Assembly: GCF_002571385.2 (NCBI RefSeq)
Contig: NW_019218304.1
Coordinates: 91,665-155,664 of the forward strand
DNA: 64,000 bases
Direction of reading: 5' to 3'
Source of the DNA: Stylophora pistillata
Lineage: Eukaryota
Below the pieces are notes generated by a model. That model saw only the letters and a list, made by a program, of their open reading frames with translations, was not told where the DNA came from and ran no database searches. This document shows, one piece after another, positions 28,101 to 52,570 of this stretch (within the stretch, counting starts at the first letter, position 1; each line of letters begins with the position of its first letter). The translations under genes and the position numbers were made by a program.

Positions 28101-28925
28101 TTTGTCCATCACTAAACACAGACACACCTTCTCCTTCTTCGAAGTCACATTACCAAGCACTTGTCTTTGGAAGATTTCGATATCGAGGAGCTGCTGGGAG
28201 TTGACCAGTGGTGTGGCACACCAGACGTGTTTGTTGATGACGAATAATTTCTTGACGTTCCTGTGCTTGAGGTGTGCGATGAATATGTTGAACTATGAGA
28301 GCTTGCCGTACCCGAAGAGTAGCTCATGGCTGTACTGCGGTGCGGTGCGCCAAACGAGCTGTTAGAAGCTGAACCAAAACCACTCGATGCCCCACTACTG
28401 GACGAGTAATAACTACTGGTAGGATTAACGGAGCTTCTAGATGGCGCAGCTCGGCTATAAGAAGGTGTCTGAGCGGAACTTGGTGCTCCGCGAGCTCCGG
28501 AATTCCTACTACTTTCATCAGAATACTCGATGATGTACTCTGGGTAGAACTGGTCAGCGTCAAAAACCACATAAATGGTTGGACTGTACTGGTCGTCCAC
28601 ACAAGAGTCGAACAGGTCACTCGATGGGTTGGATGGTTGCTTTGGAGGCGGTCTCCGATAACTGGAGTTGCCTTTAGTGTAAGATCCAACAAGAACTTTT
28701 GCCAAGAACATGAACTGAAACGAATTCGCGTCTTTCTTCGCATAAGCATCGCTGTAGGAGGCATTTACAGCGAAATAACTTCCCTCGCCATAGACAGTGG
28801 CGTTCTTGCCGTTTAGGCGCCAGTCAAAGTTTTGCTTACATATGGCCTCCACAGCATCGGGGCTGGTTCCATGGAACAACCTCTTTTCGTTCAAAGAGTG
28901 ACTACCTCTCTTGATCGCTAACATG
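25189..28925. repeat. Copy 1 of a ~3.7-kb segmental duplication (PARP-B last exon and 3' flank)
   Basis: Colinear with 52571-56251, including a shared MITE, the ATC-rich tract and the terminal PARP exon. Confidence 0.9.
26308..26590. repeat. Degenerate (ATC/GTC)n trinucleotide repeat
   Basis: catcatcgtcatcgtcgtc...; it explains the low-complexity ORFs 26039-26671 and 26397-26684. Confidence 0.9.
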
Positions 28926-45071: not shown

Positions 45072-48000
45072 ATGCCTGTCAAACACGCCTCAACAAAACG
45101 TAGCGGAAGAGTTCAACAGACCGATAAACCAGGGTGGGATGGTTTAAGTGGCAAGGTTTCCAACATGGTTGAACAGGCCAAGATGCTTTTTGATTCTTTA
45201 TTTACCATCATCTGGAATCAAGCAAAGAACATTTTCGACAAAATGGATCACTTGAGCGGTCATTCTTCTGCTGGTTACGCGGCAGTTGCGACGATAAAAG
45301 TTATCGCCATATTGTTCATGATTATTGTTGCGGTCGAGTGCATATTTCATTTTCGATCTTATTTCTGGTTGTTATGCGGATATTTGAGTTCTCTCCTATA
45401 TTTCGCTGCTGCGATAATAGTTCGAGGTGCAACTTTGATTTTGGCGAGCGTATGGGCTATTTTGAAGCATCTTTTCGACTTCATCTGGAAAATCCTTATG
45501 GGATCGATAAGAGTTGCCATCTATTACTTGAGGCCCACCATGTTATTCGCTTTCAGTGGCGCGACTACTGTTTTGCATGACCTAATTATAATTTTCTCAA
45601 GATGGGCCTTGAATCTTGGGATTGACTGGAGAAGTTTTTCTCAGCTGTTTTGTTTGTACGGCATGGTGAAAGTGGTTTCGCTTTGGATCAAACACGGCAC
45701 AAGAGTTTTATGTGACAAGATTTCTAGTGCCGTTGAACAGGTCAAAAGGCAATTTGATGCTATGTTTACCATCTTCTCTAACCATGCAAGGATTATTCAA
45801 GACAAACTGGATCGTTTTAGTCGACATTCATTCGCTGGTTACGCAGTGGCGGCGGCCATAAAGATTTGTGTCATGTTTGTAGTGACAGCCTTTGTTGTCA
45901 AGTGCGTGTGGATAATGCTTGGATATCTTTCTATAATATCAATCCAGATCTTGTATTTTTCTGTGATGTTTATCACTAGAGGCACGAGAATGCTCATGAA
46001 TTATATGAGTGCTTCCTGTGAGAATATCCTGATTTCCTTTTGGAAAACGTTGAAGGGCTCAACCATAACTGCCTTTCGTTTTCTTAAATCTTTTCCATTA
46101 CCTTCTTTTACTGTTGTGGCTCTTATTTTATCTTACGTTATAAGTATTTTGCAAATTTGCATTTTGTGTGGTGCATTGATTATTCTTTGTTCAAAGACTT
46201 GGAACAAATATAGAGGAAAAATTCAGCAAGGCGTCAGTTTCTGGATTGGTTTTTGCCACAATGTTTTCAGTACTACTACTCCGGCCAAGACAGGTTTTTA
46301 TTCTTTACTTGCCGCCTGCAAAAGCCTAGCAAGGGTAATTCAAGTCAAAATTGATTGTTTGAGAAGACATTCGTCGGCTGCTAACATGATAGTGAAGGCG
46401 ATCAAAATTGTTGGTATTTTGTTTGTGGTTACCCTTACAGTCGAGACCGTCTTTCATTTCAGATCATATTTTTGGTTGTTGCTACGATTTCTAACTTACC
46501 TCCTACACCTGGCCGTGGCATACATCATCAGAGTTCCAAGCGTAATCTGGAAAAATCTGGTTGCTATTTTAGAGTATGTTCGAAGAGCTAACTCGGAGAT
46601 CTTCCTGGTACTCACCAAACTTGCCCTTGAGCACCTAACAACGATCTCTTCGCTTGCTTCAAATTACTCCAGTGTTTTAAATTACCAAACTAAATCGATC
46701 TCAAAGACTACCGTCAATTTAACAAAGAGCTGGAAGGGTATTTTACAAGTATGCCTCTTGCTTGGGGTACTAGCGCTGGTGTTACTTTGGCGTCTCAGGG
46801 CTAAAGCTTTTAGTAGGAACTTGTTACGAGGTAATGTACTTGCTGTTGAATGGTTGGCCGAGGCTAAAATATGTGACTGACTGCCAACTGATGGGGAGTG
46901 ACATACCAATCAGTCGAAAAGACCGACTGACAGACCAGCCAACCGACTTACTTATTACTGACCGCTTGATCATGATTGGCAGACGAAACAACCAACAAAA
47001 CGACCGACTGCCTGAGTGACGCACTGGCTTGACTGGCTGGCTGGATGACTGACTGACTGGTTGGCGGAGAAGAGGTCGCGCAGTTGTTTGCGCTGACTAC
47101 CTAATCAACTGAATAGGTTTGATTTATAGATTGACCTGTTGATCTTTGAAATGATGTATTACCCTATTTTTTTTTACACCTTTCCGTAGCAGCTGGTTGT
47201 GAGTCCACGCCTTACTGTTGGCAGTTCAAAGAGGAAGATTCGTATTCCTGGAGAACCTTTGGCCCTTCTGACAATGAGGCTTTGGAAGAGCTTTATTGTG
47301 ACGTGGATAATCTGGAAGTTAACGTGAACCTTAAAGATACTGCATTGAGGTAGGACAAAAGAGGAAAGAGTGAAAGGCTATATTCATTAATGTCATAGGA
47401 GGGCACTGCACATGTTTAGTCGAGTAGTTGGATATGTCGTCATTGCAAACACTGTACCGTGTTTATCAGCATGCAATATTAATGAGATCTAGAGGTAAAC
47501 AATAGTCTTAACGGCTTTGCACCATTTGGTATCGGTAATGAATTTGTCAGAATTGCGCGGAGAAATGTTTTTGATTGTTTCTTAAAATGATTAGGTGTGA
47601 TTGCCCGGTTTGATCGTGCAGGCAATCCTCGCTCTGATTAAGACCTTCGCCGTTAGTAGTGACTAGCATTTTAATTACTAAAGCAAACGTCATCGTCAGA
47701 ATTAAGCGAATCCTTGACTCTGAAACTGCCATCCCTCAGGCTGTAAAAATGTTAGTCAGTGAAATTATAACAATCCCTTTCGGGAATGCCTTCATCCGGA
47801 CGTTAAGACTAGTACTCAATCCTTCTTCTTTGCAGCATTTTTATGAAGTCAGCATCACAGATGTCAGTTAATTACGAAGAGATGTCCATGAACTCGCCCT
47901 CCTCTGTCCAGTTCTTGCTCCGTCGATGCTCAACACCGTCATACGTTCAGGAGCCGAACAACAAGTCATCTACACAGTGGGTTTGGTATTGGAAAGACAA

Positions 48001-49729
48001 CAATGGTTGGAAGAAATACGCTGAAACGATAGTAAGAAGTAGTAGAGAGAAATGATTTTGTAATACAAAATATTTGTAATCAAAAGCTTCCGTAAGTTTT
48101 CGTTTTATACAAGGCTCTGTGTTACATGCACTGACTTTGACGTTGAAGTGTGGTGAATGGCGTCTTGTTTGAGTACGTGAGCGCATTTGATAAGTCAATA
48201 CATTATAGTTTTTGGTGACTGCAGTGCACCTGGCTTGAGAAAATATGCTTTTGGACTCACTCTATTTATGTGGAGTTACACAGATAGGCCTTACTTTTCA
48301 TCTTCTTTTTTAGCAGTCATCTGGCGCTAAACAAGAAAAGATAGAAGCTGCCTATTTGAATGATGAACGCACTTATTCCTTTGGAAGTGGTTCACACAAT
48401 TACATTCTCAAATTCTGCGAAACACCAATGTACCAAATGAATACGGACCCAGACCTCCTTACCAAGCGACAAGTTAGAAGGAGGCCATTGTTTGCTTCAA
48501 AATCAGAACCTCAGGACACCAATAGGCAAGTGGCTGCGGATTGCTACTCACTGATATGCAATCCGAAAGGAAGGGATTTGGCCTGCTCGATTGACATAAA
48601 GCAACCCCTTATTTGCTGTCGTCTCAATTGTAATCGACAGGAAGGGTTGGGGTCTGTCAAAGTTTGACGTCTTATAGTGTGCGCGTTATCATCAAGGAGG
48701 AAGCAGGTGTCCTTGTTGAAATACACATTTGATTCCGTTTTCATTTTTAATACCATCATCAGTTCTTTAAAACCTTGGTGTTGCTAAAAGCTGCACGTAT
48801 ATCCCTGTAATTGTAGCAAGTGGTCACCCATTTCCGTTTATCTAGCACATTTCATTTTTCAATCTATTTAGGTATCTGAGAGGCAAAGCTAAAGATTTTG
48901 AACGAACGCGTTTGGAAAAGGACTGTAAGGAATACCGAACTGTAAGTCAGCGTTTTCATGAAACATTGCCGGAACACAAGGCTTCCATATTGATGGTGGA
49001 AAAAATTCAGAATGACGAGTTGCGTGAGAGATACGAAAGGTGAGACTTTTATGCTAAGATATTTTAAGAAACGGTTAATACGATGTACAGCAAATAAAGG
49101 TTGTGTGCAGAAATTACTAGGAACAGCTACACATGTACATAGTGTCTAAGGCTTCAGCCACAATAATCTTGTTTTTCTTCTAGTTTGACTTTGCCTAAGT
49201 CACGGCAGTCGGCCATTAGGTTAGTTTAACTTAGCCACCAAACGCCTCACAACTACACTCTTACTGATCAATCTTCTCTGTGTCTTTTTCCCCCTTCAGT
49301 AAGCGCGAACGAATTCAAAGGAAACTAACACTTAGAGGGCACGATGAGATTGAAAAGTTTCTGTTCCATGGTACAGCATCAGACGTTGTTGATGCCATCT
49401 GCAAACATAATTTTGACCACAGATTGCGAGGGAAGAATGGGACACAATACGGAGAAGGGAGCTACTTTGCTGTAAATGCCTCCTATAGTAATAACTATAC
49501 TGAAAGTGATGGCAAGAGAACGAGGTATATGTTTCTGGCAAGCGTGTTAACTGGTGAATCCAAGCTTGGACGTAGAAACTTACGTCGACCGCCTTTGCAA
49601 GATCCAAGTAATCTTACCAGCGATTTGTACGATTCTTGTGTTGACGACGAAAATCAACCAAAGATCTATGTCATTTTTAACGACGAACAGTGCTATCCTT
49701 CATATTTGATTAAATATGTCTTGAAATAG
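45072..49729 (+). CDS. PARP-C: predicted multi-pass membrane WWE-WWE-PARP mono-ADP-ribosyltransferase; about 974 aa
   Basis: Exons 45072-46830, 47190-47349, 47836-48031, 48314-48525 (GC donor, AG|GCAAGT), 48872-49039 and 49300-49729 give a 2925-nt open frame with the same intron phases as PARP-A and PARP-B. Exon 1 is 586 aa of hydrophobic repeats. Downstream motifs: PYCWQF, WVWYWKDNNG, VRRRP, FLFHGT, NFDHRLRGKNGTQYGEGSYF, YDSCVD, KIYVIF..QCYPSY. Confidence 0.8.
46875..47080. repeat. Degenerate (GACT/GACC)n tetranucleotide repeat in PARP-C intron 1
   Basis: gactgactgcc..gaccgactgacagaccagcc..gactggctggctggatgactgactgactgg. Confidence 0.75.
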
Positions 49730-51131: not shown

Positions 51132-51290
51132 ATGATGCCTCTAAAGAACGATTCCAGGAGACATCTCGGAAGCCTTTAACAGACCGAGTGGAATGGTTTA
51201 CGTAGCAAAATTTTCGATACGGTTAATCAGGCCAAGATGCTCGTTGATTCTTTTTGTACCATCATCCGTAACCAAGCAAGGATGATTTCC
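51132..51290 (+). pseudogene. Truncated duplicate of the PARP-C 5' end
   Basis: Reads MMPLKNDSRRHLGSL*QTEWNGLRSKIFDTVNQAKMLVDSFCTIIRNQARMI against PARP-C MPVKHASTKRSGRVQQTDKPGWDGLSGKVSNMVEQAKMLFDSLFTIIWNQAKNI. There is an in-frame TAA at 51177, the 5' UTR also aligns, and homology stops at a LINE. Confidence 0.8.
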
Positions 51291-51304
51291 TTTGATGATT
51301 CACT

Positions 51305-52228
51305 TTAAAAAATTTACCATAATACTCTTTCCTCACCTTACATAAATTATGGCTGTTTAATATGGGCATCTACCTATGCTTCATACCTTAAACCCCTTTA
51401 TGTACTTCAAAATAAAGCCGTTCGTATAATTACTTTTTCTCTTCTGCGTACATCCTCTAAACCCCTTTTTCTAAGCATAATATTCTTTCACTTTACTCTA
51501 TTTATAAATTCCATGTTGCCTGTTTTGTATTCTCACATTTTAATAACCTTTTACCTGCTCCTGTTTCCTCGATGCTTCATTTTAATTCTGAATATCACAA
51601 TTATTTGACTCGTTCACGTTTTAATCTACATGAAACCTGTCATAAGTATCAATTTGCTATCACTTGGCAAGCTCCTATTATTTGGAATGATATTCCGTTA
51701 TCTGTACGCAATAATCTCACAGTAAGTAACTGCAAAAAAAATCTTAAGACTGTATTTTTCTGTGAGGAGTTAATAATTAGCCTACGCATAATCTTATGAA
51801 TAAAGATTTGGAAATGCAAAGACAAGCAAAACCCAACAATAAAAACCGACGTTTCGGTGTCATCATGACGCCATTGTCAAGGAGAAGTAAAAATTACAAA
51901 GTCTGCGGCAAGGTGCATGCCTTATGGGACTATATTAGGTGTATTTGTTTTATTTGTTTGTGTGGTTTATGAATTTATTATTAGTTGTTTAAATATTTAA
52001 ACTAGTTGCCAAGTATTGTATCTCAATTGTAAGTTTTTTTTTTCTGACTGACCTTCTCTTTCTTGGTTTAATTGTATTGTAATTATTTTAAGTCAAGCTT
52101 TCTTCTACTCTTGTAAATTCTTTTGCTGACCCTTGGCCATTTAAGCCCGCGGCTTTGGCTGTTCTTGTATATTTTTTTCCTCCAGTGTGTGAGGAATAAA
52201 GAAAATAAATAAAAATTAAAAATAAAAA
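51305..52228 (+). mobile_element. CR1/L2-group LINE 3' fragment with a nested Penelope terminal piece (~51800-51910)
   Basis: Encodes YINYGCLIWASTY...LYVLQNKAVRIITF...PLF...HNYLTRSR...APIIWNDIP, with an A-rich tail at about 52195-52228. The nested gacgtttcggtgtcatcatgacgccattgtcaagg is identical to the copy starting near 24428. Confidence 0.8.
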
Positions 52229-52570
52229 CAAGATAGATCATTTGGGTGGACATTCTTCGGCTAGTTATGCGTTAGTTGTCGCGATAAAAATTGTTGCCAT
52301 ATAATGATGATTATTTCTGCAGTCGTGTGCGTATATCATTTTCGATCTTGGTTCTGGTTATTGTGTGGATTATCGATTTCCCTCGCTCGTTACGCTGCAA
52401 AAATAATAATGAGTTGCGCAATGTATGCCTTCTATGGCATCTCGAGAATCGCAATATATGGCAACTCTCAGTGATCCCACTGGGATCGCTGAGAGATATC
52501 ACATATTACCTCAGGTTCAATACGTAGTTCGCATTATATGGCGTGTTTACTGTTTTGCATTACTGAAATA

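Follow-up and report, generated by a model that had tools for sequence, protein, structure and literature searches.

We analysed a 64,000-nucleotide stretch of the genome of the coral Stylophora pistillata (NCBI RefSeq assembly GCF_002571385.2, contig NW_019218304.1, positions 91,665 to 155,664 of the forward strand; hereafter the window, in whose coordinates positions are given). The gene LOC111341798 (45072-49729, + strand) most probably encodes a coral-restricted, all-helical hydrophobic domain that is spliced by a phase-1 intron onto a WWE1-WWE2-PARP module of the PARP12/TIPARP/ZAP type, and the product would be a membrane-embedded enzyme. We put the probability of this explanation at about 0.7. 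An earlier reading of the same DNA (the first-pass annotation) had proposed a multi-pass membrane WWE-PARP in which a zinc-finger exon was swapped for a hydrophobic domain.

Gene structure and database record

The six exons of LOC111341798 are on the + strand, and their splice sites were read from the sequence. Exon 1 (45072..46830) extends from an ATG to a phase-1 donor (G|GTAATG) and encodes 586 aa, consisting of a basic N-terminal tail and three hydrophobic units of ~190 aa each. Its 612-codon open frame is no chance event (at 41% GC and ~0.05 stops per codon, the probability is roughly 1e-14). Intron 1 (46831..47189, 359 nt) carries a degenerate (ACTG/CTGG)n repeat. If the intron is retained, the exon-1 open reading frame (ORF) continues to a stop at 46878-46880, with the tail GNVLAVEWLAEAKICD. 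Exon 2 (47190..47349, 160 nt) has a tandem acceptor (tagcag) and encodes what is left of the last CCCH finger (AAGCESTPYC), followed by the N-terminal half of WWE1 (Pfam WWE, E=1.3e-4). The end of WWE1 and the start of WWE2 are encoded by exon 3 (47836..48031, 196 nt). The remainder of WWE2 is encoded by exon 4 (48314..48525; Pfam WWE, E=3.1e-7), which also has a tandem acceptor (tagcag), and a GC donor (AG|GCAAGT). Exon 5 (48872..49039) encodes the N-terminal portion of the PARP catalytic domain, and exon 6 (49300..49729) encodes the catalytic core and the stop codon (Pfam PARP, E=2.8e-23). The exon phases are 1,2,0,2,2. The sequence bears out the first-pass annotation on the six exons, on the phases, and on a hydrophobic first exon of 586 aa with a phase-1 donor. 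In Pfam searches run exon by exon, exons 2 and 4 matched WWE, and exons 5 and 6 matched PARP. P0060, a database protein, served as the query for full-length searches.

Intron 4 is of the GC-AG type (donor at 48526), and its junction (...DTNR|YLRG) was found in the spliced contig ORFs P0063, P0066 and P0067. The two NAGNAG tandem acceptors (47184-47189 and 48311-48316; tag|cag) give rise to the RefSeq isoforms X2 and X3, which have one-residue differences at these sites and are 973 aa each. Exon 2 of isoform X2 begins at 47193 (P0059 versus P0060), and X3 arises at the exon 4 acceptor. Within intron 1, a poly-T tract (47167-47175) has 9, 10 or 13 T when the assembly and the transcript contigs are compared.

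The translations of all six exons occur in order within P0060 (XP_022804545.1 / PFX16748.1, 974 aa), at residues 1-586, 588-639, 641-705, 706-775, 777-831 and 833-974. UniProt (A0A2B4RK56) labels this protein 'Poly [ADP-ribose] polymerase', and NCBI labels XP_022804545.1 'uncharacterized protein LOC111341798 isoform X1'. A literature search by accession and by keyword (PARP, transmembrane, WWE, coral, PARP12/TIPARP) found no description of a hydrophobic domain combined with a WWE-PARP. The first-pass annotation had called the architecture unrecognised. This stands for the published literature, but the protein itself is already in RefSeq, GenBank and UniProt. The architecture is undescribed, not unseen: it is a variant of a known enzyme family and is already public in annotation.

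Evidence for the joining of the hydrophobic exon to the WWE-PARP exons

Five independent lines bear on the junction between exons 1 and 2: an orthologue contig, a tandem paralogue, fusions within single ORFs, a protein of Oculina, and the lack of a start codon. The orthologue contig is from Pocillopora, in which a 947-aa ORF (P0084) on a 3610-bp Logan contig passes from the hydrophobic domain (...SNLLG|AGCKSTPYCWQF...) to the PARP C-terminus. Its identity is 97.6% with the 947-aa fusion model of P. damicornis (XP_027041653.1) and 69% with P0060. A 2.8-kb, six-exon ORF on a 3.6-kb contig must be a spliced mRNA if the introns of Pocillopora match those of S. pistillata, for whose locus the exon structure was established.

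The tandem paralogue, PARP-D (L013), has a 329-aa hydrophobic ORF that ends at another unit boundary, yet keeps the phase-1 end (GAC G|GTAAGA). The ORF stops four codons past this donor, and an acceptor (aacag|CT GGT TGT GAG) and intact WWE and PARP exons follow. The P. damicornis orthologue of PARP-D is annotated as a fusion (RMX47701.1, 667 aa). In two more distant homologues the hydrophobic unit runs into the start of WWE1 within one ORF each. P0049 has four short units and then ...KNCPIPYCWQSKKSDSY..., and P0056 has one hydrophobic unit, an intact CCCH finger (CPDSPLGKCAMGPGCKNKH) and CPMPFCWQF. A protein of Oculina patagonica (XP_078357765.1, 599 aa), named 'TIPARP-like isoform X2' by NCBI, has one unit followed by WWE-WWE-PARP. 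The same fusion, which the first-pass annotation had proposed to seek in other anthozoan proteins, is thus found in annotated models, orthologous or analogous, of P. damicornis and O. patagonica.

Finally, in the window allele a stop at 47147 interrupts the frame of exon 2, and between it and the end of the exon there is no in-frame ATG, so only the fusion yields an AUG-initiated protein with an intact WWE1. The exon-1 ORF is open in both Stylophora and Pocillopora and is 67% identical between the genera; identity to the Pocillopora orthologue is 67-88% per region. Our searches for fusion ORFs longer than those described here found none. These results support the hydrophobic ORF as the first coding exon of the WWE-PARP gene. 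By sequence comparison, the fusion is conserved in at least three coral genera (Stylophora, Pocillopora and Oculina).

The hydrophobic domain

Exon 1 has a mean Kyte-Doolittle (KD) hydropathy of +0.69 and contains nine non-overlapping 19-aa windows that reach KD >= 1.6 (up to 2.75), none of them outside aa 70-575. No such window was found in the PARP part of the protein or in exon 1 of PARP-A, a zinc-finger paralogue. For four of the nine, the summed Hessa energy is negative. Several predicted hydrophobic helices of at least ~19 aa therefore reach the transmembrane (TM) threshold, as would be expected of a polytopic membrane protein.

Exon 1 is a triplication with a period of ~190 aa, visible at the DNA level (nt 72-227 of the exon against 636-791, and nt 105-302 against 1212-1409). 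In every unit an amphipathic helix precedes the DxLDRLSGHSSAGYA motif; two hydrophobic helices with a linker of only three residues (...AVE..FHFRSYFW...) come next, then more hydrophobic helices, and a last helix that basic residues follow. In unit 1 (45144..45716) an amphipathic helix leads into DKMDHLSGHSSAGYA, then a tight hairpin (...AVECIFHFRSYFW...) and additional hydrophobic helices. Unit 2 (45717..46286) was delimited by self-similarity and unit alignment. Unit 3 (46287..46829) ends with the last TM-like helix (ILQVCLLLGVLALVLLW) and the basic stretch RLRAKAFSR. By positive-inside reasoning only, this stretch and the basic N-terminus would place both ends of the domain in the cytosol.

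An AlphaFold2 (AF2) model of the whole of exon 1 was all-helical and unusable (predicted local distance difference test, pLDDT, 61.5; predicted template modelling score, pTM, 0.34). A model of unit 1, again all helix, had pLDDT 85.9 and pTM 0.36. We identified no Pfam family for exon 1, no usable match to it in the ESM Atlas, and nothing covering aa 1-586 in a PDB sequence search. Foldseek of the unit-1 model against the PDB gave no match at E <= 0.001.

The hydrophobic family has 35 relatives among 1.84 billion representatives, none of them named, and the named members found via clusters are all from scleractinian corals. The number of units varies (1, ~1.7, 3 or 4). Exon 1 consists of the unit that is shared by several members (P0035, P0041, P0043, P0029 and the giant ORFs of L016), with a DRLSGHSSAGYA motif, then AVE..YHFRPYYW and a terminal LLWRRR helix. 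These members have one or many units, no PARP was observed on them, and there is no Pfam model for the group. In the S. pistillata genome, members without PARP (giant ORFs on C186 and a single-unit ORF on C94) are both near PARP clusters, which suggests local exon capture. The presence of a strongly hydrophobic, triplicated orphan coral domain as exon 1 is thus supported.

The WWE-PARP module

The best PDB match of the catalytic domain is human PARP12 (E=2.6e-38; exon 6 alone, E=1.6e-33). Its H, Y and I residues (in FLFHGT, GSYF and YVIF, respectively) fall in the same alignment columns as those of human PARP12, in agreement with the first-pass annotation, in which the triad was reported as intact. 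The WWE region matches ZnF5-WWE1-WWE2 of ZAP (7kzh, E=8.5e-11). The PARP match of exon 6 is to PF00644 (E=2.8e-23), and the WWE matches of exons 2 and 4, to PF02825, are two stretches in P0060. We conclude that the module is a PARP12/TIPARP-type mono-ADP-ribosyltransferase, with its activity predicted from the motifs. No zinc-finger Pfam match was found in P0060. As had been noted at the outset, the CCCH finger before WWE1 is reduced: exon 2 retains only AAGCESTPYCWQF and is 141 nt shorter than exon 2 of PARP-A (160 versus 301 nt).

Alternative explanations

Several observations weigh against the fused protein as the sole or major product. For S. pistillata itself, the 46830/47190 junction rests on RefSeq/GenBank models. 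We take it that Gnomon isoforms such as X1 and X2, which differ only at the exon 2 acceptor, normally need transcript support. In P0066 and P0067 (S. pistillata) and P0075 (Pocillopora), exons 2-6 are spliced and the 3' end of intron 1 is kept upstream of them. The ORFs P0001 and P0071, on Logan contigs, run through the donor to the stop at 46878-46880, and P. damicornis has a short RefSeq isoform (XP_027041654.1, 382 aa). Intron 1 is thus retained in some RNA in both genera, and the fused form may not be the sole or major product. These data could be explained by two products, with the hydrophobic ORF translated mainly as a stand-alone 602-aa protein when intron 1 is retained, the WWE-PARP expressed mainly from transcripts in which intron 1 is kept or provides the start, and the fused mRNA being minor. 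The existence of PARP-free family members (the L016 giant ORFs and the L017 single unit) and a read-through tail (GNVLAVEW) that is identical in both genera are consistent with this. As proof of a stand-alone product the tail is weak, given that the PARP-D tails GKKHD, GRIHD and GRIYN are similarly conserved beside the donor. We consider two products distinctly unlikely in view of the fully spliced orthologue mRNA P0084 and the fusions within single ORFs (P0049, P0056). Furthermore, the phase-1 donor is found in two paralogues whose exons 1 end at different units and in at least two genera, and the exon-1 ORFs stop only 4 to 16 codons past it. A conserved ATG in intron 1 that would start a soluble isoform was considered and set aside, as the window allele has none in frame after the stop at 47147 and hence none ahead of WWE1. 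The 'MMYYPIFF' starts of P0066 and P0067 require 13 or 10 T, versus 9 T in the window, and are not conserved start codons because they depend on poly-T length variants.

If the fusion is real, its N-terminal domain could still be something other than membrane-spanning, for example an amphipathic repeat that lies on the surface of a lipid droplet or monolayer, much as perilipins do, or a helical bundle or oligomer that is soluble. There is no confident AF2 tertiary fold, and the model has very long continuous helices with no packed bundle; helices of ~87 residues are impossible as single membrane spans. Several hydrophobic segments contain K, E, H, D or R, and related giant genes carry ~55-aa amphipathic repeats. 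This possibility is nevertheless unlikely: several of the 19-aa windows have KD 2.4-2.75 and a negative apparent insertion energy on the Hessa scale noted above, pairing of hydrophobic helices across three residues (RSY) is the pattern of a membrane hairpin, and the last helix is flanked by basic residues. We regard as very improbable an annotation artefact or a decaying gene, in which an unrelated ORF or repeat was joined to a WWE-PARP by the predictors. The cluster does contain pseudogenised copies (C186:39575-48424, with stops, and the relic at 51135-52560) and exon 1 belongs to no known family, but the model is open for 974 codons with canonical splice sites. The exon-1 ORF and the per-region identity are also maintained in Pocillopora, and P0084 is a spliced orthologue mRNA.

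Origin of the first exon

In PARP-A, exon 1 ends in phase 1 (ACA G|GTAAGA). Exon 2 (12930-13230, 301 nt) begins CT GGA and encodes an intact C-x7-C-x5-C-x3-H finger before MPYLWQY; exon 3 (13547-13742) has 196 nt, and exon 4 ends in phase 2. The match in gene structure between LOC111341798 (PARP-C) and its zinc-finger neighbours, which the first-pass annotation had described, holds: PARP-A and PARP-C share a phase-1 donor (G|GTAAG) after exon 1, an exon 2 start of CT GG(A/T), a 196-nt exon 3 and phases 1,2,0,2,2. Intron 1 is at a homologous position in the zinc-finger and hydrophobic paralogues. From this, and from the finger beside the hydrophobic unit in P0056, we infer that the hydrophobic exon at some point replaced a finger-encoding first exon.

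The proposed exon swap is only partly borne out. The homologous intron 1 favours it, but no zinc-finger exon lies close to the nearest WWE-PARP paralogues. These lie on C94 and C1252 and share 68-70% identity with LOC111341798 in exon 6 (PARP-B, 58%; PARP-A, 42%), and within ~4-10 kb upstream of them we identified no zinc-finger-like or hydrophobic-like ORF of >= 90 aa. Gain of the hydrophobic exon by a WWE-PARP and later loss of the last finger fits as well as a one-step swap.

Related genes and copies in the cluster

A degenerate, frame-shifted partial copy of the hydrophobic exon (51135..52560, + strand) is 1.4 kb downstream of LOC111341798, with 49-68% identity to aa 1-169. No + strand PARP exons follow it, and it is a relic outside the transcript. 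PARP-D is just beyond the end of the window (L013 1439-7099 = C519:157103-162763, C519 being the scaffold to which the window belongs). It has ~1.7 hydrophobic units and WWE-WWE-PARP, with HGT, GSYF and VIF intact and the same phase-1 donor. Its intron 1 is ~1.2 kb and full of (ACTG)n-like repeats; the intron is largely a degenerate ACTG/CTGG tetranucleotide repeat in both paralogues (46831-47189 and L013 2413-3644).

We identified a pseudogene copy of PARP-D in L014 (C186:38000-47900) and C186:47983-48424, with stops in the hydrophobic exon, WWE1 and the catalytic exon. In addition, part of the zinc-finger exon of PARP-B has a 98% copy at C186:2433-3320. Thus, C186 carries a diverged duplicate of the PARP cluster. 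The two giant ORFs of the hydrophobic family (726 and 920 aa) are in L016 1265-6635 (C186:21165-26535). They have many added ~55-aa amphipathic repeats, and both terminate in ...ASQVC. Next come small acidic exons, repeated, with ...NPSPEPAIER at their ends, and no PARP exon directly after. The single-unit ORF (176 aa; L017 5019-5549, - strand; C94:710018-710548) is 1.3 kb downstream of the last exon of another PARP gene and resembles single-unit ORFs of 200-270 aa from other assemblies (P0035, P0038, P0041).

Comparison with other PARPs

The protein resembles the CCCH-WWE PARPs (PARP12, PARP7/TIPARP, PARP11 and PARP13/ZAP) in its tandem WWE, a catalytic domain closest to PARP12, the H-Y-I triad, and the intron positions and phases of the zinc-finger paralogues in the window. 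It differs in lacking a CCCH finger, which is absent from PARP11 too, and in having the 586-aa hydrophobic orphan domain instead of an N-terminal RNA-binding exon. We know of no CCCH-WWE PARP with an integral membrane domain, and our literature search brought up none. To our knowledge, the vertebrate members of the ZAP/PARP12/TIPARP group reach membranes by lipid anchors only, and PARP16 does so by a single tail anchor.

PARP16 (ARTD15) is a tail-anchored mono-ADP-ribosyltransferase of the endoplasmic reticulum (PMC3372510). It is an intracellular enzyme on a membrane with a cytosolic catalytic domain, as the coral protein would be. However, PARP16 has its one anchor at the C-terminus and no WWE, whereas the anchor of the coral protein would be N-terminal, multi-helix and triplicated. 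The coral C-terminus (...YPSYLIKYVLK) has no tail anchor, and none of the PDB matches at E <= 0.001 is to PARP16; PARP12, PARP15, PARP10 and PARP14 head that list. The resemblance is convergent, not membership.

ZAP-L, the long isoform of PARP13 with a C-terminal CaaX, belongs to the same subfamily and depends on membrane targeting, by S-farnesylation, for its activity (PMC8568172). Its anchor is a lipid, its RNA-binding fingers are kept and its triad is inactive, whereas the coral protein ends in ...IKYVLK (no CaaX), has no fingers and has H-Y-I. The last exon of the neighbouring PARP-B (28145-28924, - strand) ends in a CaaX-like ...SKDKCLVM. The cluster may hold both a putatively lipid-anchored and a helix-anchored paralogue.

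Proposed function and significance

That the protein inserts into a membrane, its topology and catalytic activity, its place in the cell and its biological role are all things that we infer. The N-terminal domain would insert into a membrane inside the cell, either as helical hairpins or by crossing it several times. This would keep the WWE reader and the mono-ADP-ribosyltransferase with its H-Y-I triad on the cytosolic face, where the enzyme could act on itself and on targets near the membrane. Antiviral immunity is a known setting for zinc-finger PARPs (PMC11784840). Our best guess for LOC111341798 is an innate-immune or stress role, because the gene sits in a fast-evolving tandem cluster of ZAP/PARP12-like genes, paralogues and pseudogenes.

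A broader proposal, which is tentative and more doubtful than not, is that the coral-only hydrophobic unit is a new membrane-targeting module, present in varying copy number on a WWE-PARP of robust-clade corals. It might station ADP-ribosylation on an organelle membrane (e.g., viral replication compartments or the symbiosome), with intron 1 as a switch: its splicing would give a membrane-bound enzyme, and its retention separate products. As the sequences are in public databases, an advance would have to come from experiments rather than from sequence.

The locus is a natural example of exon shuffling in an immune gene cluster that evolves rapidly, and it brings to light a hydrophobic orphan family that is restricted to corals and has a clear, conserved motif. 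Members of the ZAP/PARP12/TIPARP group of intracellular PARPs serve in antiviral and stress responses, and their cellular location decides their targets. A multi-helix hydrophobic domain in place of RNA-binding fingers would be a different solution to membrane targeting, and LOC111341798 is a candidate for membrane ADP-ribosylation in a symbiotic animal.

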